From NCBI GenBank assembly GCA_048013815.1, contig CM106585.1, forward strand, positions 930,001 through 994,000: a stretch of DNA of 64,000 nucleotides. Direction: 5' to 3'. Each line of letters opens with the position of its first letter. The stretch's first letter is position 1. The notes under the pieces are model-generated. The model worked only from the letters and a program-made list of their open reading frames with translations. It was not told the DNA's origin and did no database searches. Of this stretch, positions 35,979 through 52,500 are shown piece by piece. Source of the stretch: Setoptus koraiensis (lineage: Eukaryota; Animalia; Arthropoda). Both the position numbers and the translations under genes were made by a program.

Positions 35979-37088
35979 CTATAAGTCCAATTCTTTATCG
36001 TTACGTAATGGTTGAAAATAAGATTGTACCATTTCATCAGTGACTTCTTCAAGAGTGGAAGGCTTCCATTTAGGGCTCTTATCTTTGTCAACAAGAAGAG
36101 CTCTAACGCCTTCATAGAAATCACTGTTGTCTTCTAAGAATCTGACACTTATAATGTACTCCATCTTGAGGCATTCGCTTAATGATAGTGACTTTCCGCG
36201 TTTCAGCTGTTCAAAAGTGACTTTCAATGATGTGGGCGACATCTTTCTCAATGTTTCAATCTGTTTTTTTGCCCAATCAGTATTGTCTTTTTGTAAACCT
36301 TGTATTATCTCCTCTACCGAGCCAGCCTGACCAAAAATACTATTGATGCGTCCAATGTAGGGCTTCAACGAAAACTCTTTACGATAGTCTATTTCCCATT
36401 GTTCCTGATATTTAGATAATATACTGTCTATTGTTATAACATTTGGATTCTCTAAACGCATTAGTTCCTCTTCTAGACTATTTAATTTGTCTGACGGTAC
36501 AAAATGTGTCGCTATACCAGCTTTAAATATATCACGGCCAAACAAACGATGGCCAGTTAAGCCTAGGAACAGGCCTAAACTGCCTGGACATCGTGGTAAA
36601 AAATGAGATGCACCAACATCGGGAAAGAAGCCAATGGCGGTCTCTGGCATGGCGAAAATGGCCCTCTCTGTTACAACGCGAAAATTGCCATGTATTGAAA
36701 TGCCACAACCGCCACCCATCATGACGCCATTAATTAAAGCTACATAAGGCACTGTTAGCGTGCCAATTCCATGATTGATGGTATATTCGTGCCGAAAGAA
36801 ATCTCTAGACGCCTTGCGGGCCGATATAATTTCTTTGATATCACCACCGGCACAGAATGCCTTCTCTGACGAGCTCTTAACCATCACCATCTTGATTTGA
36901 TCGTCTTTGTCCCATGCCTTCAATTGGGGCAATATTGCTTTGGCCATCCCGTAATTGATTGCATTCAATTGTGCTGGCCTATTCAGCGTTATAACGCCGC
37001 CCGTACCAGATTTGCCTAACTTGCACACCTCGAGAATAACATCCTTGGTTGCCTGGTGGCTCATCATCCTGGTTATATTGGCGAACAT
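35979..37088 (-). CDS. HIBCH: 3-hydroxyisobutyryl-CoA hydrolase, mitochondrial; intronless, ~369 aa
   Basis: Crotonase-fold motifs ITLNRPAQLNAIN, KAFCAGGDIK, GVMMGGGCGISIHG, FAMPETAIGFFPDVG, MSPTSLKVT and DFYEGVRALLVDKDKSPKW. First ATG at 37088. Confidence 0.96.
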   Translation of the reverse strand: MFANITRMMSHQATKDVILEVCKLGKSGTGGVITLNRPAQLNAINYGMAKAILPQLKAWDKDDQIKMVMVKSSSEKAFCAGGDIKEIISARKASRDFFRHEYTINHGIGTLTVPYVALINGVMMGGGCGISIHGNFRVVTERAIFAMPETAIGFFPDVGASHFLPRCPGSLGLFLGLTGHRLFGRDIFKAGIATHFVPSDKLNSLEEELMRLENPNVITIDSILSKYQEQWEIDYRKEFSLKPYIGRINSIFGQAGSVEEIIQGLQKDNTDWAKKQIETLRKMSPTSLKVTFEQLKRGKSLSLSECLKMEYIISVRFLEDNSDFYEGVRALLVDKDKSPKWKPSTLEEVTDEMVQSYFQPLRNDKELDL

Positions 37089-40000
37089 CCTAAGATGCAA
37101 TAATCAACTATAGTCAGACGCTAATCAATAATGATATTGGAGATATTGATTTTTTTCTGTCTTGTCTTTCTTTCCCCACACAAATTCTCCGGCTGGTGGG
37201 CGACGTTATGCCTGTGTGTGTGTTATTTAATTGGTCGATTGTGTGAGTGGATAATATTACAATTTACTCAACTGACGTATGCTTGACTTGTCTAATTTGG
37301 CCTGTTAGAAATGATGATCTCTGAAGCCCAGTGGCATTCACGTGAATAATCCAATACCATTAGCCCGAATCAATGGATATATAATAGGCGGTTAACGTTC
37401 ACAACAGTGCCTTCTTATATAACCCTGTAAAATTGTGTTAGTCTGTGTTATTCAACATTTAAAATGCAGGAATCTTCAATGTACAATCTGATGGGCATAG
37501 GTCGACGAACAAATGATGATTTTGTGTGTCATTGCACAGAATTTCTGTTTGAGTGCGCAAAACATGCTCATTGAGAAGAGGCGATCGGCGCGCTAATTGT
37601 GCAAGCATTCTTGTTCAAGTTTTGCACCAACTAGTGCGTCCATTGAGTCATGCCTATGCATGTGTTGTGCGAATGAAGAATGAAATTTTATTTACTATTA
37701 CTATTGTTTTTACAGTGTTGCCAGGATTTGAATATTAGTTAATCCCATTAGTAGATTAATAACTATGAGTGTGTGCATGAAAAAAAGTGATATATTTGTT
37801 GCGATCTTGCCAGTGTGTTAGCTGGCACACACGCACATGACAGTGATGAGATTCCAATGCACAACATGTCAACACTGTGCAGTAGAAGCTTTCATTCTGA
37901 ATCTCGGCACACTTGATTTCCGCGCCACAAATCTATAGGTACTCAGAGAGGACATAGATGGCGACCAAGTATCTGTATAGACTCAACTAGGATGGGTGAG
38001 CAGAACAAACCATCAAATTGAACTAATTTACCTAATACATCTCACCGTCCGACGGTGACCGTCGATTCAGCTAGTTCAACTCACAAACAATATATTGTTC
38101 ATTAGAGATAGCTCAATTACTTAACAAATCCCCATTTTCCAGTGTCGACAATCGCTAGTTGGCTTTCCACTTCCGGTTTATCGCATTATCTCGCGAGCTA
38201 ATCGAGTTGGAATGCAATCAAATCAAAATCTGCCTTATCTAACAGGCCCGTACTCGCTGCACTCTCATCTTGTAGACATTTTCGATCAATCATCTATCTC
38301 AGCCAGTGGGTACCAGCAAATCACAACTACAAGCTATGCTGAAATGTTACAACAGTAAAATATAGCCACAAGACACCCATCGATTTACCGTTGTGCATGA
38401 GGCCAGTCTGCTGAAGGTGGAATTATCACGCATCTATGAGGCATCCTGGTCGCCTCGGTGACAGGTCCGCCTTTAAAATTAATTTATCCTCAACAGAACA
38501 ACTGGAAATCGATTCTATGGAAAGACCGAGAATGCAAGCGAAATTCCAGCTGTGTCAGTGCTTTAAGAAAGGGACAACTATAAAAACAAGACATTGTGAG
38601 CAGAGAGGAATTTACATGAACACAAAGCTACAAATCACTGCGTGAATCTTGTCTAACTTCGACAATTCCCAACTTTTTTTATCTACGTGTCCTCGTACTT
38701 CCACAGACACCACTGATAACTAGCATCAGTTTGATGTCAGATATATCCAACAGTTGAGATAGATAGATTAGACAGGCAACTCTTGGTGATCACAACAACA
38801 GGACCTAGTTGACATTTGATTAATTTGCTGTCCACTTTGATGTCGAGACACTCCGATGATATCGCTCTCATCAAGGTAAGGCACGTAATTTGTACATTAA
38901 GCGTATGTCAATCACTTTGAATAAACAAACATTCTGCAGTGTTGCAGTGTAGAGCACTGTATGTGGTGTTTGTCACTAATTTGTACAACATCAATTATAA
39001 AGCCAATGATCACTATGGTCAGTTGTAGCCATGTTTTGACAACACTGCGTCGTGTTCGGAATCAAGAACAAGTGTGACAACTTTAACGTACCTTTTTAGT
39101 TTTTATCTGACACCAAATTAACTTTCTTTTCTATATGCCGTCTTAATTAGTGCTGACCTCCTATTGAAACACCACAATGGTGGTGCTGCTATACAATATT
39201 ATTCATAGTGGTAACGAAGGAAGACGAGACCACAGGCTATTTCATTCATCTTGTTGGACACATTTAGCCTTGCAGATTGATTAGCAACGCGAACATATCC
39301 AATAGAGAGAAGAAAATCTTTGACAGACCAAGACAAACAAAATAGATTGAATAGTTTTTTACTCTTACTCGATGCGTAAAAACATCCGACACCAATGATA
39401 GCTCACAAAGATATCACACAGAAACACATACACAAAACGAACTCTATGGCTTATAACTGGCATCAGTCTAATAAGTCAAGCCCTCTTATTCTAACGTAGA
39501 GTTTAATTAACGCTAGATTTAATTAGTAGAATACAAAAATAAACCTGGTCACTTCTTTGGATAGCTGACCAAAATGAAAAAAAAACATGCTCTACGTGAT
39601 GCCGGTCAGTCAAAGAAGCAGTACAAGTATTTGAGAATAGTTGCACATCTAGATAAGTCAGATGGAATGAGATAGACAGGAAGATAAGTTAATCAATAAC
39701 TAAGCCACAGCTATTCCATTCGAACTGCACAGAAACTATTCAGTCGAATTCCTTTCGCCTTGAATCGCCGTTGCGAGAGAGGCTTTGCTAGTAAATTAAC
39801 TTCGCTTAATATGCAAAAAATCAACTATCGATATCGAGTGAAATTTGTATATGTTCTTAATCCAGTTGTATATTTGTAAATAATATATCTATCATATATT
39901 TATTTATTTTTATTTATATATCTATGTACAATATTTTGATTCCAGTACTCGCATGTTACAGCTACAAATAACTTGACATGCGTGTGCTTGAATGTAGATC

Positions 40001-41511: not shown

Positions 41512-41803
41512 TCAGCAATCCGTACTCAACTTATCTGGCCAACCATAAGGGAATGGAGTGTTTCCATTCAGGCTTGACGCACCGGCTGTGCTGCTGCTAT
41601 CGTAAATGGCCATGATGTCATGAGCTTGTTGCAATTGATTGTTGCTGTTGGCGCTATTACAATTGATGGCAGTGGCCACTTGAGGACCGATGGTAGTTTG
41701 TTGGGTTGATTTCGAGCAGATAATGTTAGTTTTTTGATTATCGCGAACTATGGCAGGCAAGGCAAAATGGCGTTGCTGACCACACGGTGTTTGCTGTTGT
41801 TGT

Positions 41804-41835
<32 letters not shown>

Positions 41836-44800
41836 ATGTACACTTTGGCCATTGACTGATTGTTGGACAGCGGATTTGAGTAATCTTGATGCTAAAGCCA
41901 ATTGATTCATTTGCATTTGCGGCTGATGGTGACTCTGTTGTGAGGCACGACCTCCCATGGTTTGTGAAGACGAAGAGGAAGGAGATACTGCTGCTGTTGT
42001 ATTCAAGCCGAGTTGACGCGCAAGAGTGGCAATATGTCTCGCTTGCTGATCCGGACTTAGCTGACCATATAAAGTAGGCAACAACAATTTGGCAATGTAA
42101 GGATTGTCGTCATCGATACACTCGTAAATGTGCTCTTGCATGAGACCTTTTGAAGTGGCTGTAGATCGTTGTTGCTGATGTTTTTGCTTGATTAGAAGTT
42201 GCTGAACTATATTTTGCACCTCAGACTGATATGCGTTGGGACAGGACATTGATAGTTGCGATAAAGCATCACCGTATTGGTGTAAAGCAGAGTTAGATAA
42301 GAGGAGCGATAAATCATTTGTAACAGCACCTCCAGATGTACCATTGTTTGCGTCGATTTGTTGTTGGCTCATAGCTTGGCCAGCTAGTCTTCTACAACCA
42401 TAATCGGACGATGATGTTAACGATTGTTCATCCGTTATATGGTAACCTTTCTGTTGTTGGCTATTGTTTGTTGTTGCCGAGCTAGATATAGACTCTGCTG
42501 TATTCATCATTGGTGAAACTATAGACGAGTTTTGGTTCAATTGATAATGATTGTTGTTTGAATTGGCTTGATGAAGACCGTAAATTTGTTTTTGCTGTTG
42601 TTGCTGCTGGAACAACAACTTGTTTCCATTGCCCAAACCTACTGTCACTTGGGTAGGATTGTAACTCAAAGATGCATTGTTGTGCGACTGCATAGGAGTT
42701 AGTTGACACGATTGTGCACCTCCGTCTATTAGATTATTTTGTCCATCAAGTGGAGCATCGCCAATCTGATTGTTTAGATAAGCGGCCGAGATTGCTATCT
42801 TCTGCTGTTGCTGACCTGAACCAAACGCATTGGCCATATTATGCGATTGATGGTTGAGCACACTGTTTCTCACTGATGTTAGTGTATGCTGATTGGTCAC
42901 AGGATGACGAACAACACCACTCAAAGAACCTGAGGAATAGGAAGATTGATTTGAAGAAGCAGCGCCGCTCAAATGGACATTAGCTGAACCATTGTTGCTT
43001 GGATATTTCCCTGTCGGACTAGAGTTATTCGGGGCGAGTGACAATCTCATGAAGAAACGGATCAAACTGAAACGCTGAAACACAAGTTTGTAATAGTGAA
43101 GGACCTGATTGCTTTGTAAACACTGTGTAGTAAATATAAATATACCCATTAAAGCATTGGCCACAGCGAATATCAATGTAGAGACGACAATAATTATTGC
43201 AGATCTCTGATGATTGTAATTAGGTAACTTCCCAGGTGATAATTGGCTCCCAAAAGTAGATCCGACTAAGAGCTGTTGTTGAACTATACCGTTGTTGCTG
43301 AATGAATTATGTTGAATCACACTAATATTGTTACTATCAATCAGGTAGGGTAGAGCAAGCGTCCATGTGAGGGCAACCAATAGTACCAGTAAAATGGTCT
43401 TTTTTAACCTTACACTGTACAACACAAAATTGGGAATACATAACATAAACAATAATCATAAATATGCATGATTTGTTTTAGTGATAGATATATAAAATGA
43501 AAAGAGAAACAGCAATGATTAACGTTTGATACTTTAGGTCAAATTATTTATAAGTGTAACTGTGATATTAACCGAGAAAAGTTAATTAACATAAATAAAT
43601 AAAATCAAAAGATAAATGAGTGAACATAAAGATTTACTTACCTCATGTGGTTGAATTTCTTTCTATCAGATTGCTTCTTCAGTGTCAATGTCATGTGATT
43701 TGTTGTGATTAAACCACTAGTGAGGTTTCCACCGTTACCAACATAACCGTTCATGTGTCGGTTATATTTATTGATATAATATACGCATATCACTAAGTAG
43801 GTGGCCGTGGCTACAAGCAATAGAAGTAGGGGTGCCATTGCTAGAGACATGAGCTTTTGACCACTGAAAACAGTAGCTGCTCCAAATGAGGATGCCGCTA
43901 ACCAGCAATGGTTAATTACTAAAGATTGCTGACTGGATGGCCCATAATAATAAACTTGTGGTGTTACAAAACTAGTTATGCAAACAACTAGACATGGTAC
44001 TGCATATGCTATCAGGTGCATATATCTTGATCGTCTTGTTGTCCATGAGGAAACTTCTAAATGATCATAGTGGTCAACATCATTCTTGTTAAGCCAATAG
44101 GCATTGCTTTGTTGGATGTCACTTGTAGGTGAGTTACAGTTGATAACATTCCGAATCAAAGGAATAGGACCGGTAGTGGCGTTGTTTATCAGCGGTGGCA
44201 ATGTGGCAGTAATAGTTGCGTTAGTGTCTTGAGAAGTTGGTGATCCTATGGACGAAGAATCCGTTTGTTGCTGTTGCAATTGTAGCATATGCTGCATTAA
44301 ACTAATATCATGACTCTGATTACCGCTCACTACTAAACAAGGATTCGGTGAACTGGCCGGTTGTTGATGGCTAGACAGTAGCGATGCTAACTTGTTCGCT
44401 TGCTGATTCGTTCTATGATGGTGATGACTATGTTTGTAATGATTGTTGACGGCTGTAGTCGACTTGAGGAAGCTCTTCAAATTTTTATGCAATTCATGCG
44501 CCTCGATTAAGCACCACATAAATGTGGCCATTAAAGCAAAGTGCATTAGACGCGATACAACATGACAATAAAGCTTATGATGATTATAATGATTCACAGT
44601 GACCAGATATAAAAACTCTACAACTAAGACTGTAAGGCACAGATTCTTATAAATAATCATTCCAATTTCACTATTAGTATTTTTATGTAGTTGCTCATGC
44701 ACTGTTGGACTGTTTATGTTATTATTTCCGTTAATCAAGCAAGCAGAATTGTCGAACAAAGATGTATTGGTGTTGTTTATTGCTGGAATTGGGCTCATAA

Positions 44801-47395
44801 AATCATCTACTAAGCTTGTGGATGTGTTATTGTAGTTGTTGATAACAGTGTAGGATGTTTTTTGCTGAATGTTTTTTTGTTGATGCTGACCATAATCTGA
44901 TTGCTCTTGTTGTTTAGATATTGTATGGCTATCTACTCTCTGCTGAGGGGCATAGATGGTATTATTGTTGCTAGTCGATGCAGATGATAACTTTTGCTGT
45001 TGCTGATAATAACTACTTGCACCATAATAATAGTTGTTATTTCTTTGTTGTTTTCTTTGATTTGAAAGTCTTCTTTGTTGACGCACCATAAAAACTAAGG
45101 TGATCAATGTTAGACTCAAGCACACAGACGATATTATAAAGCTACAGAAAGTTATCGTACGCCAAAGTGGATCGTGACTCAGATAAGGCATTGGCACCGT
45201 CTATATTGTTGTATACATTTGTTGATGCAGCGAGCATTGTTTAGTTTTTTCATAATAGAATGTGTAAGATATATGAGAATAAAAGAGAGGTGGGAGAAAC
45301 CGATTTGAGGTCAGTCACGCGTACAATTAATTTGCAGTGAGAAGGTTAAAATTTTGTCATCAAATCACTCAGTATTGTATATCTACATAGATTGTACAAC
45401 CTTGGGTAATTGAATTTGTCTTTTCTTCGACAGTGTTTTAAACAAAGATCTTAAGCAGAACAAAATCTGAAGTTATGAGGCATCTCAGATGGTACTTACC
45501 ATACTGTTCGGAATGGTCAGGTCCATAAGGACAGCATAATAGGCTAAATGATCACAAGAACAACTGGTATGAGTGGCATTGGTTTCAATGTGTTTGCAAC
45601 CCTGGCCTGTCCAATCTTTTCGCATTTGATCCCAAAAAACGCATCTAGGATTTGTTACATTATCTTGTTGCAAATGGCGCATTGTTATTGATACTGGCTC
45701 GCTCAAGATAATGGGTCTATCCATCGTGGACAAAGTTGTTAGATCACTATTTATGAAAGTAACATTTCTCTGTTGATCTGCCGACTGTAAGTATTTGGTG
45801 ATGATTTGTATCAAGGCAATGATCAAGATGATATAATTGATTAGTAATAATTATTACCAGTCTATTTGAAATAGATGATTTTTTTTTTTTGAGAATATGA
45901 AGAAATTCAAACTTGAGTCGATTAGATCACTTACCGCATCTACCACGACGACATAAACAGTTAGTCTATCACAAGCGCAGCTGGTATGAGTTGTATTTGT
46001 CTCAATAAGCGCACAGCCTCTAGTTGTCCAAACTTTAGATTGTTGGTCCCAAAGAACGCACCTCGGATTTGAAATGTTTCCTTGCACTGGTGAATGGTGA
46101 CGCATTGTTATTTGCTCTGGCACAGCTAATACCAATGGTCTGTCTTTTAGTCCAATCATGGACAGAGACATCACTTCGCTGTTGAAGAAAGTAACTGGAC
46201 CTGTTGCTGGATTTTTGTTGTAGTTGTAATTGTTGTTGTTGGTGTTAGATGGTGTTGCATCATAAGAGTAGGGCGGTGGCTCTGATCCATTAAATGTGGA
46301 TGGATCCATTGGAGCAGTTATTGGTAGACGAATAACGTTTGAGTATAATTCTTCAAGATATTGCGGACTAAGTGAGAGTTGTTCTGATACTTGATCTGAA
46401 TCTGGAAGGCTTGGATGTTGTATTTGACTAATTTGAGATTTACTATTACTATTAATTCTCGTGTTTGTTGACGGATTATTATTGCTATAAGATGGCAATT
46501 GACGAGGATCTTGTATAGTAATAGTTCTGTCAGGTAGATTATCTGTAACAAATGGTTGATTACTTGGTGGTTTGATAGGTGTTTGATTCGGTGGATTAAC
46601 AGTGGGATCTGATCTAGTCCAAATATCCATGTTATTTATTGGATCTGATTGGACTGATGTATGGGGCACTGGTGGTTGTGTTTGTTGTTGCGTTGGTGGA
46701 TAATTGCTATTACTATTAGAGGGCTGTTGCTGTTGTATTAGCTGAGGTATTTCTTGGCATTGATAATGTACTTCAAGATATTTGCGCGTTTTAGGACATT
46801 TATCACCGAATATTGAACTTGAGGCATTAACAGCGCAAGATGGTTGCATATCGCAACGTTCTTGCATAATTCTGAAAGAGATGGGCGACATACAATCGAT
46901 GCTCCAATCTAATTGGCCCTGCTCGTTACAGATGGCTATTGAGAATCTACCAAAATTGGCACGAATTAAATTAATTCTGGTGCCCTCATCACATTCAATT
47001 TGTAGCTGACGATCTTCGCATGCCAATTGGGTAAGGTAGCGTGATTTAACTACTGGCAGGGCATGCTGTTGGCCGCTTGTTGTGGTCCATAGTGATGTGC
47101 TGTTTTGTTGATAGATGAAAGCCGAATTGGGTGCATTTGTAATGGTGGAGGTGGTGGGGTTATTTTGAGCGGTGTTTGCGTTGGCGGCCTCAGCCACACC
47201 AAGCAGATGATTATGGGGCCACTTGGCGTGCACATAATCAATATTATTATTACTGCTAAGGTGGTTGTGTTGTCGTATAAATAAATGGCTCATATATATA
47301 ATTGGATAACATGGTAATAGTGAATTGATTGCACAATAAGCAACAATAACAGTGATCACATTTAAGATAGTAACGGAGTGATGATTCCTCACCAT
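41512..47395 (-). CDS. Cirl: Latrophilin/Cirl adhesion GPCR with duplicated GPS. Exons 47395-45935, 45784-45500, 45200-43642, 43414-41512; ~1735 aa
   Basis: N-terminal hydrophobic leader; SUEL/rhamnose-binding lectin (ACED..LQIEC..G..I.LIRANFGR...C...YLEVHYQC); two GPS motifs (NPRCV.WD....W...GC......T..SC.C); secretin-like 7TM (KNLC, HF..MATFMWCLIEA, YAVP, CWL, LTWT); cytoplasmic EHIYECID motif; C-terminal STDC. All three introns have GTAAGT donors and phases close the frame (5208 nt). Confidence 0.9.
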
Positions 47396-49500
47396 ATTTA
47401 GTTTTTCACATCTTCCAATTTCATTGTTGTGTGTGATGGTTAGCTGTTGTTTGTGTATTGGTGCTTGCCTCTGTTTGTTGCTCTATCTTCTCTGATTGGT
47501 TATTCTCTGATTGATTATTCTCGGATTGATTTTTCGATTGGATGCTGAGTTTGAATTGGTGGCTAAATCGGTGACAAAATGTGGCTGTAATGTGAGAGTT
47601 CAGTTGTCGCGCTGCTAATTGAATTCATTCGATGCTTATAAATTAATTAAAAAATGCTGATAATTCTAGTTAAATAGTGATAATGGTAATGCATTGAGTT
47701 GTGACGCCGGTGTCTAAAATAATAAATGATGATAACAATTAGCTCGTGTGCAAATCGAATCGAATGAAATCGAATGCAATTGGAATATGTTGACGCATAA
47801 AGTTGATCGTGTGTTGCATGTACTCTCGTCGCGGACGCTGAAACAGACTAAATTCTATTTCAAACAGTTCGCTCAGTTTCGTTCGTTCGTTCGCTCTCTC
47901 GCTCGTTCGTTCGTTCGCTGCCTGCCGCTTGCCGCTGTTAGTTCGAATATCGACACACACACACACACACTCTTGCTCACGAACAGCCTAGTGAACAGTA
48001 GATGCCATGGCACTAACACGCTCCATACCATACTACAGTGACTACAGTAAAGTGCTGTATAGTGCTGTACAGTGCGCCGGCCCGGGCCACGGAATTGAGC
48101 CACCAGCTCACACAAGCAGCGCACAGGTTCCACCACTGCGCATCAGCGATAAGATTCGATGTGCGCATGCGCAGTGTCACCATTGTTCATCATGAGCGTC
48201 GAATCATGAGCTACACACACACGCACACACACACACACACACACACAGTCTAACACACAGAGAGCAGTACTGTAGACACACGCACACGCATACTGTATGG
48301 GGCATACACACACTACTACTAGTACAGTGCAGTATAATAATAAGGCAGCCGAATGTGCGAATGTGCGAATGAGCGAGCAAACACAAACGAGAAGCATGCA
48401 CACACCGCGATAGAACGATACAAGTTCTATCGCGGCACAACAACCGACCAGCGATCGAACCAATGGATGGACAGACGGACGCACCAAGGGCTCGTTACTT
48501 GCCAGTTACAACAGCATGATGAAACCAACACTAATGATGCTGTGCTGAGCGGCTCGTTTTTTCCTCTGCTTTCGTTTGCTTTCGTCCGCTTGCGTCCGCT
48601 TTCGTATGCTTTAGTTTTTAGTTCGTGCTTTTGCACAAAACAACCGCAGCTCACCGTTCAACAGAGACTGTTCAACAGTGACTGCTGTGTTTGGGTTTCT
48701 TGGCCACTCGATCTACTCGCTGCTGCCAGCACACACACACACACATGCGAAAGCCATACAACAGCGCGTGCTTGCGCCAATGCAACGCCATGCAATCCGG
48801 GCCGCAGTGGTCGCCAGTGCAGTGGCTGGCAGCGGCAAGTAGCCAACAAGTTGACCATTGTCCAGTGTGGCGGTCGGGTAGGTGTAGCGACCAATTAATG
48901 CACAGACACGCACAGGGATGTAAATGATAGCTGGTGTGAGTGCGCAGTGCAGGGGAGAGAGTACATCTGTGTTTGTATGCACTGTTGAATGTTGCCGGCG
49001 CTGCTGTTGTTGATAATAAGAGCAGGCACACATGAGAAACAATCATGACATGGTTGGCTGAAAGCAGCGCCTGCTCTAGGTCATCATTGGTCATCATGAT
49101 GATAATCATTGCAAATTGTAAGACAACATCAGTTGGCGCTGATGCTCGACTCGCAAATGCTCAAATGGCAGCCAGTCTGTCAGGCTGGCAGCCGGACAGG
49201 CAGGCAGGCGAGCAGTCAGCCAAGCACAGCAACAACAAGTAATTGAGAAGACGGAGCAGCATACAGTAACGAGCATCATTATCATGGCCACGGCCAAGTC
49301 TGCACTATGTTAATGGTCAAGTTCCTCCAGCAAACCAACAACTGGTGCTACTGATACCTGTTTGTGTCGGCGCAGCAACAGTGACAGATAAACAATCACA
49401 TTCGTCGGGCCGGTTATCGTTTGCATTGGCCGCCGTCTGACACACACACACACCCCGGTGACCGGTCGGCTTCAGGCGAACGTGTCGACGATAATTGTGA

Positions 49501-49502
<2 letters not shown>

Positions 49503-49537
<35 letters not shown>
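49503..49537. repeat. (GT)n microsatellite
   Basis: Seen directly in the sequence. Confidence 0.95.
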
Positions 49538-49539
<2 letters not shown>

Positions 49540-52500
49540 GCTCATGTGAACAAGGGCGACATAAAGTTTTCACTGTCGTCTGCACTCAACTTTGTATAGT
49601 TGACAGAGCACACAAGTTTACCTGTGCTCGTCATTGCCTGTCGGCTGTTATTATTGGCGCAACGTCGAATGTTTTATTTTAAAAAGTTTGCTCTTAAACT
49701 GGGCGACGCTGACAGAGCCAGCCAGTTGGCTGACATGTAAACGGCGACGCTTCGAGCGGCTGACAATTGTGAAACTCAATCACATTCGTCACATCATGGC
49801 TGACTCACGGGCTGGTTGTTGTGTGAACTGGCCGCTGCCACTGAGACAATTCACGTAGGCTAGTGAGTCGCAAATTAAAAGTTCAACCACACTACAGTTA
49901 TGATTATCGTTTCGTTGAGCCGTTTCGCTGTGCCGATTGTAACTTTCGTTGGTGCCATTCACATACGCACTACATACACACACAGCGAACAATGTAAGCT
50001 GTTTGTGTTAGCGCCAAACACAGCGCAACGGACGATATTAATCATCAACTGTCACCGGGCCATCAATTGGGCACTGGCCAACTTTGCCAGCTCGGCCAAA
50101 GCTGACACTTGGAGAGCGGCCACAAGCGACCGGCCAACATTCATTGGTCGCCAGTGCGTATGTTATTGTTGGCGACCATAATAATAGTAATGATAATAAT
50201 AGTAATAGTGATAATAAGGCGTCCGCTAATACTTCTGGTCGGCAAACGCCACGGTTGCCTAGTGATTCACTACTAGTGAATTCCTGAGGCCCGTCGCAAA
50301 CTGCGCAAACGGTGCAGTGCGCGCGTCACCAAACCCGCGATGGGCGCCCCTCGTGTGTGCAACAGTGCGCACAGCCACGGTCGCGCAGCACCCAGGTGAG
50401 CGCACGGCATAGAGCGTCAGAGGCAGCCCATTGGCATGGGCCGACAAGCGGCCACCGACAAGCGACGAATAATAGCGATAATGGGCGATAATGGGCAAGA
50501 ATCTTAAGTGATTGTCATCATCATTTGTTTGCATCAGTGGCGGCCACTAGATTTGCTCGCACCAACGTACGCACAAACGTACGTAGGCATAAATGCACAA
50601 ATGAAGCTACAAACGTATTGTGGGCCCATTGTGAGGCGCGCAGCAGTGCGCTCAGTAGTGCGAGGTGGCCGCGGTTATTTGTGGCCGCTGGCGCGACGAT
50701 AAAGACGTCAATGTGGCCGAAATGAGACAACAATGACATGGGCAAATCGGGCCAAGAATAGGCCCACTTTTGTAGCGACTAGCGGCTATCGTTGGACGGC
50801 AGCAGCAGGCGTTGGGGCAAGGTTAAGGTCGACACACACGCACGGTTGGTTGGAAAATGTTTGAAAAAGCGGCTCGGAATAACATTTATGGCGGTGTTAG
50901 TCGTAGTGTTAATAATTGTTGCTGATGATGTTGTTGTTTGTGAGCATATGCAAATGTTGCTATGTGTTTGCTTGTCGTTGTCGCACTGATTGTTGTCTCA
51001 TTATGGTGGTGCCGTTGTGGCGCACAATGGCGCACAATGGCACCACCACCGTACGTCTGTCAAGAATCCAGGTGAATTATCGATTATTCTTCTTGCTGGC
51101 TTATACTGGCTTACGCTTATACCGGCTCACGCTGCCTGACGCTGCCTCATACTGGCTCATGCACAATGCGCAGCACAACCGACAACAATGCGGCCTTATC
51201 TGGCTTTATCTGGCTGCAAAGTGAGGCAGCGGATTTAATTCTAACATCTAAATAGTATCAGTGGTAGCACAATTAAAGTAAAGTCCAGCAAAATACTTTG
51301 CGCGTCACTGTGCACTCAAGAAGCGCCGGTGTGCACTTTTTTAGCGTGCCCAATGAAACGATTCGTTCGCAGGTTTCAATGGCTGGCCAATGGCATCCGT
51401 TGGCCACGGTATCGCCCATGGGGGGACTCTAAACTTTAAACGAATACAAGTAAAACTAATGTGAGGACAAATGCTCGCTTCCATTGTTGCCTGACAGAGG
51501 CAGAGTTGCTTTTTGTGGTCGCTGTTTGGCATTTTGAGAGAACGGGACAAAACTGCAAGACAAACAACGACAAACATCAGTATCAATTCAATCATCTGTG
51601 GACAAACAATCGCCGCCATAATGAAGCCATAGACGTCAGTGCGTGCGGTGTGCGCCTCACTGGCCCGTTTATGCCTGTCATGCCCGTGCAACGCGGGCCC
51701 GGCCTCCGCCGGACCCGTGACAATCGCCTAAATCATTGCTTCTCGTCTGTCAATTATCGCTCCCAATCGATTCTTGCGCTCTCGTCGCTGCCCGTAGCCG
51801 CTCGTGGCCGCTCTTGGCCGCTCTTGGCCGCTCGTCGTTGCCCGTCGCTCTCATCGCTGCCCGCGGCCGCTCGTCGATTCTCGTCGGATTCGCTTGAATT
51901 CGCTTGAATTCGCAGTTGTCAGTTGTCGGTCTCAGCTCTGATTCAATTGGCGTTTATTCGATTCGATGGCCAATCTGATCCAATTCGATCTGATTCAATT
52001 CAATCATTGCGGCGTCGCTAATGGATCAATTCGCAACGACCGCATTACCTGGCCCACATGACAGCGCATGCAAATGCGTCGCTCCACTCGGGCCCACATG
52101 CCACAGGCACCGCTGTCAGTGCCGTTGTCAGTGGCGCTGGCGCGGGCCCGGCGCCCCGTCTGTCGGCCGGCCGAGCGGTGGCCGCACGACTCTCGATGCG
52201 TTGGAATTTGCCCGTGCAGCGAAACGAGCCAACAGGCAACAGCAACAGTGACAGTGACAGCAACGGTGATATGAGCGCTGATGGCAACAGCAACATGGGC
52301 ACTATATACGCGCCGTTAACGTATCAGGCACAATTATATTGAGTAGTGTGTCAATATAGTGGCACCATGGAAGCGAGCGCTCAGCTTCCGACCACCAACT
52401 GTCGACATTCAACATGACGCGATGAAAATCGTCGAGTTTATGTCAGTTTATGATGCCGGGCCGGGCATAAACACGACGCTCCGTTTCGAGTGCGCCAATC

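Follow-up and report, generated by a model that had tools for sequence, protein, structure and literature searches.

The GAIN domain found in G protein-coupled receptors of the adhesion class (aGPCRs) counts as an indivisible fold of some 320 residues, the last strand of which is a built-in agonist. In receptors of the latrophilin/Cirl type (ADGRL; dCIRL, rat CL1, PDB 4DLQ), an N-terminal SUEL/RBL lectin and a GPS before a secretin-like seven-transmembrane (7TM) region are combined with a long cytoplasmic tail. These features are shared by the four-exon gene described here, which runs on the minus strand from about 47395 to 41512 of a 64,000-nt stretch of Setoptus koraiensis CM106585.1 (the window; all coordinates below are window positions). 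It departs from latrophilin/Cirl in that no HormR domain, GAIN subdomain A or first half of subdomain B is detectable, in that the half-GAIN which is left occurs twice, as units A and B, in that the H-L-T cleavage triads of both units are broken, and in that the 7TM loops carry very large N/Q-rich insertions. We suggest, with a probability that we would put at roughly 0.6, that the gene encodes a strongly reduced Cirl/latrophilin-type receptor whose product contains both half-GAINs and stays uncleaved, with B as its working module and A as an accessory one.

The family assignment of the first-pass annotation, which had called the gene a latrophilin, stands at the level of type: the protein has a SUEL lectin, a GPS and a 7tm_2 domain, and its nearest named relatives are annotated as "latrophilin Cirl-like". 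Named matches are a "latrophilin Cirl-like" protein of Tigriopus, a lectin-HRM-GAIN protein of Sarcoptes scabiei (KPM10509.1) and a protein of Tetranychus, and the nearest named Atlas cluster is "latrophilin Cirl" from Arthropoda (score 0.77), which serves as a lead only. The Sarcoptes protein has both HRM and GAIN, whereas the window gene has no detectable HRM, and the Tigriopus model does not align by BLASTP to the 7TM exons 3 and 4. On these sequence comparisons the Cirl/latrophilins appear to be the closest named relatives, and we claim no strict orthology.

Both units lie where they had been placed, on the minus strand, with unit A (VTFFNSEV...VVVVD) at 46195-45938 and unit B at 45784-45500. 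One refinement is that only unit B is an exon of its own. Unit A is the 3' end of exon 1, a 90-aa block (aa 398-487; 45935..46204, minus strand) recognized by Pfam GPS, BLASTP and structure matches, and exon B, recognized by Pfam GPS, BLASTP and an RNA contig, comprises 95 codons, or 285 nt, in phase 0-0 (45500..45784, minus strand). Pfam locates the GPS motif of A at 45959-46066 and that of exon B at 45527-45649, again on the minus strand. The intron between them (45785..45934, minus strand) is 150 nt long, reads GTAAGT...CAG and contains two in-frame TAA codons, and about 7 residues separate the last strand of A from the first strand of B. An origin of this intron as an introner or miniature inverted-repeat transposable element was rejected, no terminal inverted repeats having been found.

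The likeness of the two units, estimated by eye at about half, is confirmed by BLASTP, in which 47 of 86 residues are identical (55%, E 1e-33), a likeness that chance does not explain. The two PF01825 matches that had been anticipated are present at 40.7 bits (E 3.5e-10) for A and 57 bits (E 2.7e-15) for B, against a cut-off of 22.5, and each copy retains the four GPS cysteines and both tryptophans, in columns where 77-90 of 90 homologues also have C or W. Synonymous sites between A and B are saturated (Nei-Gojobori (NG86) dS about 2.6; third-position identity 47%), which argues that the duplication is old.

An ortholog allows the selection on each copy to be gauged. A protein-representative search with exon B returned P0001, a fragment 92% identical to it, the source of which (L001, a Logan contig of 10.2 kb) comes from a related species and holds the ortholog of the window gene, about 89% identical in nucleotides. 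The exon layout of L001 matches that of the window gene: neither unit is disrupted, and the four splice sites that flank them are all conserved. Comparison of the window gene with L001 by the Nei-Gojobori method gives dN/dS values of 0.061 for unit A (4 amino-acid changes in 25 nucleotide substitutions; dS 0.41), 0.070 for exon B (8 amino-acid changes in 32 nucleotide substitutions; dS 0.58), 0.066 for the 7TM exon 3, 0.13 for the SUEL lectin, 0.21 for exon 4 and 0.30 for the low-complexity linker between lectin and unit A, which is 64% identical to L001 at the nucleotide level and has in-frame indels. The A/B intron is just 60% identical to its counterpart, with indels that are not multiples of 3. 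Since A and B have values close to that of the 7TM exon, neither copy is drifting, and the constraint on both is like that on the 7TM exon. With the saturation described above, these ratios bear out the earlier view of an old and selectively retained duplication. That one copy might instead be decaying as a relic or be a pseudo-exon that is not used, or that the duplication might be an artefact of assembly, is hardly credible: the non-canonical cleavage triads of both copies would suit such an account, but two species assembled independently each have the two copies intact, at dN/dS of about 0.06-0.07, B is spliced into RNA and A stands in the open reading frame (ORF) of the lectin domain, so that we consider it largely refuted.

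GAIN domains have been described as a subdomain A of 2-6 helices followed by a subdomain B of 12-14 strands, in which a V(S7)-W(S10)-W(S11)-L(S14) cluster lies buried around the cleavage site (PMC11697300). Each unit corresponds approximately to strands S6/7-S14, which is the half that holds the V-W-W-L cluster, and the prior claim that each represents the C-terminal half of GAIN subdomain B is upheld by alignment, by AlphaFold2 (AF2) and by Foldseek. Both units align with the last ~85 residues of the solved ADGRL3, ADGRL1 and BAI3 GAIN domains, the best solved-structure sequence matches being the GAIN domains of ADGRL3 and ADGRL1. When residues 121-487 of exon 1 were modelled from a 26-sequence alignment, unit A was predicted with 6-7 strands at a predicted local distance difference test score (pLDDT) of 78-93, and the region from the lectin to A fell below 50; exon B, modelled alone from a 94-sequence alignment, was predicted with seven strands, a mean pLDDT of 90.5 and a predicted TM-score (pTM) of 0.80. 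In Foldseek the model of unit A matches the GAIN structures 4dlo, 8oek and 4dlq, and that of B matches the BAI3 GAIN domain (4dlo) with a TM-score of 0.73 and a root-mean-square deviation of 2.8 Å over 84 columns. The model of exon B also matches the cytoplasmic region of UNC5b (3g5b; TM-score 0.57, 93 columns).

Upstream of unit A there is no similarity to solved GAIN structures, and the Pfam scan gave no match to GAIN (PF16489) and none to HRM (PF02793) at E<=0.1. The usual place of HormR, GAIN subdomain A and the first strands of subdomain B is occupied by the linker (46205..46756, minus strand), 184 aa of which 62.5% are P/Q/S/N/T by composition count. What is present of the GAIN domain is thus its last ~85 residues, with 6-7 strands per unit and nothing ordered upstream, rather than a complete domain.

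The cleavage triads and the tethered-agonist (Stachel) columns of both units were compared with 90 homologous units. Unit A reads R-L-T, with Arg at -2 where 71 of the 90 homologues have His, and unit B reads H-L-A, with Ala at +1 where 80 of the 90 have Thr or Ser; 72 of them have L at -1. The corresponding triads of L001 are R-I-T in A and H-F-A in B, so that variation is tolerated even at -1. Either of the substitutions H-2>A and T+1>A suffices to stop the cleavage of Drosophila dCIRL, and cleavage is itself dispensable for function; the H>A receptor works normally, and the T>A receptor is null (PMC5548486). From these mutants and the broken triads of both units, we predict that neither A nor B should self-cleave. 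Unit A thereby resembles the dCirl H-2 mutant, and unit B has the same HLA as an engineered uncleavable ADGRL3 (T>A, PDB 8JMT); in contrast to those engineered changes, the ones in the window gene are natural, are kept between species and are split over two copies within one protein.

The last strands differ between the units as well. That of B, AYYAVLMD, is tethered-agonist-like: it keeps the agonist positions Y+3, A+4, L+6 and M+7, and its +1 residue stands about 27 residues before TM1. That of A, TVYVVVVD, has V at +4, +6 and +7, so that the conserved L+6 and M+7 are lost, and it lies about 100 residues from TM1. For these reasons, and because neither copy has an intact triad, the idea put forward in the first-pass annotation that the units supply two alternative tethered agonists appears unlikely. 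The retained agonist residues and TM1 distance of B, set beside the altered strand of A, suggest to us that B is the working module and A an accessory one.

Exon 1 (45935..47395, minus strand) is an unbroken ORF of 487 codons that comprises an ATG, a hydrophobic, signal-like N-terminus, the SUEL lectin, the linker and unit A; its reading frame is kept in L001 despite many in-frame indels. The SUEL/rhamnose-binding lectin occupies aa 133-213 (46757..46999, minus strand; Pfam PF02140, 67.3 bits, E 1.6e-18). The exon ends at the donor GCG|GTAAGT, and in a donor scan the only strong phase-0 site was this one, at 45934, with none that is usable upstream of unit A. Exon B brings no signal sequence with it, so that A is part of every coherent product that includes B. 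Mutually exclusive use of the two units was considered and rejected: unit A is no separate exon, the lectin-linker-A ORF is continuous and conserved, and a phase-0 donor upstream of A is lacking. Downstream of exon B, which has a strong donor, a 299-nt intron (45201..45499, minus strand) runs from the donor ATG|GTAAGT to the acceptor TATAG|ACG, both of which are kept in L001.

Direct evidence for the splice from B to the 7TM exon comes from X1, an RNA-type run from a third species that is a closer relative. One X1 contig (record 3) skips the intron: beyond the start of exon 3, at 45200/45201, it goes on into 29 letters that match, in reverse complement, the 3' end of exon B, apart from three synonymous differences. 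Another X1 contig falls inside exon B, and 9 of the 10 differences between X1 and the window are at third codon positions. Searches with exons B, 1 and 3 for a transcript or gene model containing both A and B gave nothing beyond fragments of L001 ORFs and single-unit relatives at a greater distance.

A search with exon 1 recovered at least 23 Logan, ENA and JGI sequences in which a lectin and a low-complexity linker are followed by one unit at the end of the ORF (proteins P0046-P0163). They share the design of exon 1, which is followed by a 7TM exon, and they too are predicted to be uncleavable; their single unit, NPRCVLWDQ..W..RGS...THT.CAFDQATSYLLVMDY, lacks cysteines 2 and 4 as well as the triad's HL, whereas the window gene has two units with all four cysteines in each. 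At three loci (L002:8652-8945, L003:9156-9434 and L004:9045-9257) the single unit is followed by the 7TM ORF within 17-209 nt, a gap that leaves no room for exon B. The remnant of about seven GAIN strands in these relatives lies outside the 12-14 strands reported for 14,435 GAIN domains. One further relative, P0105 (923 aa, from a 5-kb Logan contig), has in one continuous ORF a lectin, a unit and TM1 that lead directly into a Q-rich tail (EHIYECVDDDKPYMARLL...KLSTDC), with TM2-TM7 missing, and may represent either a single-pass splice isoform or a gene of its own.

The relatives bear on a proposal in which the two half-GAINs pack together, or exchange strands, to form one composite GAIN-B-like sandwich that would replace the lost N-terminal half. 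We find this unlikely. It would account for the small size of each unit, about 7 strands where a normal subdomain B has 12-14 (PMC11697300), for the lack of a detectable subdomain A or of any early strands, and for the gap of just ~7 residues between the last strand of A and the first of B; yet at least 23 relatives have one conserved half-GAIN with no partner, three loci are without exon B, and AF2 folds B alone with a pTM of 0.80. A lone unit is thus viable, and neither the pairing nor the domain swapping raised in the first-pass annotation is needed. Speculative too, and to our minds improbable, is the notion that after the loss of GAIN subdomain A and of the first half of subdomain B the two half-GAINs act as one unit. 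They might build a composite sandwich with pseudo-symmetry, or they might be a switch that works by strand exchange; in the latter case TVYVVVVD of A would compete for the groove that holds AYYAVLMD of B, and force on the lectin-bearing stalk would free the agonist of B to the 7TM region without cleavage.

In a maximum likelihood (ML) tree of 57 units, A, B and the single-unit clade fall together (100/98), with the arrangement (B,(A, single-unit clade)) and a support of 98/92 for A plus the clade. Two derived states are common to A and the single-unit clade, and none was found for the other pairings. Tree and derived states favour an older duplication, after which B would have been lost in the single-unit clade. 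In an approximately unbiased (AU) test, a tree with A and B as sisters is not rejected (p 0.21), so that the preference for the older date is a provisional one. Unit A is in position, and probably also in sequence, the counterpart of the single unit of the relatives.

A further question is whether exon B is a facultative cassette, with isoforms A+B and A alone that would present different membrane-proximal GPS and agonist sequences (AYYAVLMD and TVYVVVVD, respectively). Such an arrangement is compatible with the reading we prefer, and we hold it to be possible although rather doubtful. Exon B is symmetric, so that its skipping stays in frame; in L002-L004 a unit of the exon 1 type stands directly before the 7TM exon, so that this junction is ancestral or at least workable; and the ML tree groups A with the single unit of the relatives. 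Against it, no junction of exon 1 to exon 3 occurs among the RNA contigs, where the only junction seen includes B, the donor of B is strong, the constraint on B is as tight as that on the 7TM exon, which fits constitutive use, and the last strand of A is without L+6 and M+7.

We therefore return to the reduced, uncleaved receptor as our preferred reading. Its main product would consist of a signal sequence, the SUEL lectin, a low-complexity stalk of about 180 aa, two adjacent half-GAINs with GPS and a divergent 7TM region, and would contain both copies, A because it lies inside exon 1 and would not be spliced out in frame, and B because it is joined to the 7TM exon. Without the His base in A and without the Thr/Ser nucleophile in B, autoproteolysis would not take place and the receptor would stay a single chain. 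Unit B, at the canonical distance from TM1, would be the functional GPS/Stachel module and would not depend on the two receptor halves coming apart, while A may be a conserved accessory module that lengthens or stiffens the juxtamembrane stalk, or shields B. Several points weigh against this proposal. The A-to-B junction was not observed in the X1 RNA, which has no coverage of unit A, so that this splice is a deduction from the gene structure, and a product that skips exon B would keep its frame too. The lack of cleavage is predicted from sequence only, and with dCIRL T+1>A being null, B, with its native Ala at +1, would need compensation to be a working agonist. The AF2 models are of isolated units and do not show how A and B are placed with respect to each other; the exon 1 run also modelled the genuine lectin domain poorly, so that the low confidence over the linker is weak evidence of disorder and a very degenerate GAIN remnant is possible there.

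The first-pass annotation knew of no aGPCR with this layout, which proved too strong a statement, since models with 2-4 GPS units before a single 7TM region exist in otophysan fishes, Darwinula, Antedon and Arctopsyche. Among the best 150 matches of the representative search, 16 proteins have at least two GPS-like stretches; five of these are models that fuse two receptor genes, in nine a lone 7TM region is preceded by 2-4 units, and two are fragments with no 7TM match. The fish models are those of Silurus meridionalis (XP_046693903.1), Brachyhypopomus (XP_076876420.1) and Acnodon (KAL7845324.1), with further ones in RefSeq or GenBank for Cirrhinus, Prochilodus, Hemibagrus and Clarias; to these are added the ostracod Darwinula stevensoni (CAG0884253.1, three units), the crinoid Antedon mediterranea (XP_071959919.1) and the caddisfly Arctopsyche grandis (XP_077283257.1). 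The multi-GPS proteins carry the identifiers P0006, P0012, P0013, P0040, P0077, P0097, P0134, P0135, P0142 and P0143, and in the three such models that were scanned, Pfam found multiple GPS and one 7tm_2 in all three. In the Darwinula model an HLT-type site (HLTNF or HLTDF) is present in every one of the three GAIN repeats.

The units of these models are spaced 150-250 aa or more apart, which marks them as whole-GAIN repeats; some have intact HLT sites and they are ADGRG- or ADGRE-like, but they are gene models only, in which a merger of tandem genes is possible. The window gene is unlike them in that its units are only ~85-90 aa long and ~7 residues apart. Its nearest analogue is a pair of catfish models (KAK3511204.1 and KAF5882404.1) with directly abutting GPS motifs, and these too are gene models only. 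Full-text searches of the aGPCR literature found no description of tandem, double or multiple GPS or GAIN. The layout is unusual, then, and not unique; what sets it apart is the presence of two abutting half-GAINs in a Cirl-type receptor without the rest of GAIN, with complementary triad defects.

The remainder of the gene is a divergent 7TM region and its tail. Exon 3 (43642..45200, minus strand; 3' boundary inferred from sequence) contains TM1-TM5, with five hydrophobic segments and a 7tm_2 match in Pfam of 42.6 bits (cut-off 20.6), and TM2-TM3 are about 32% identical to other aGPCRs. Exon 4 (41512..43414, minus strand), an ORF with two hydrophobic segments and an acceptor placed by sequence, contains TM6-TM7 and a long Q-rich cytoplasmic tail that ends in KLSTDC; the Pfam scan gave no match in it. 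Exons 3 and 4 together have seven hydrophobic segments. Long N/Q/H-rich insertions are found in exon 3 between TM1 and TM2 (~140 aa, 45140-44670, minus strand) and between TM3 and TM4 (~160 aa, 44500-44020, minus strand), and they are conserved between the window species and L001, exon 3 being 94.5% identical at the nucleotide level with the dN/dS of 0.066 given above. Elsewhere in the window, the stretch upstream of the gene at 47700-49700 is GC-richer, with many (CA)n/(TG)n microsatellite runs and no convincing ORF, and an intronless ORF of 373 aa at 35979-37100 on the minus strand resembles, by eye, the enoyl-CoA hydratase/isomerase family, of the 3-hydroxyisobutyryl-CoA hydrolase type.

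The practical value of these observations is modest, given that the evidence is all computational and that multi-GPS gene models exist elsewhere, and the minimal GAIN remnant of the single-unit relatives may be more interesting than the duplication itself. The clade nevertheless amounts to a natural experiment, in which receptors keep only the last ~7 strands of GAIN and in which one lineage has this remnant twice, with both copies under strong selection and each predicted to be disabled for cleavage at a different residue of the triad. If the reading proposed here is true, the gene and its relatives would provide a natural test of the minimal GAIN that is needed to hold and present a tethered agonist, and of whether cleavage-independent signalling can be the sole mode of a Cirl-type receptor.

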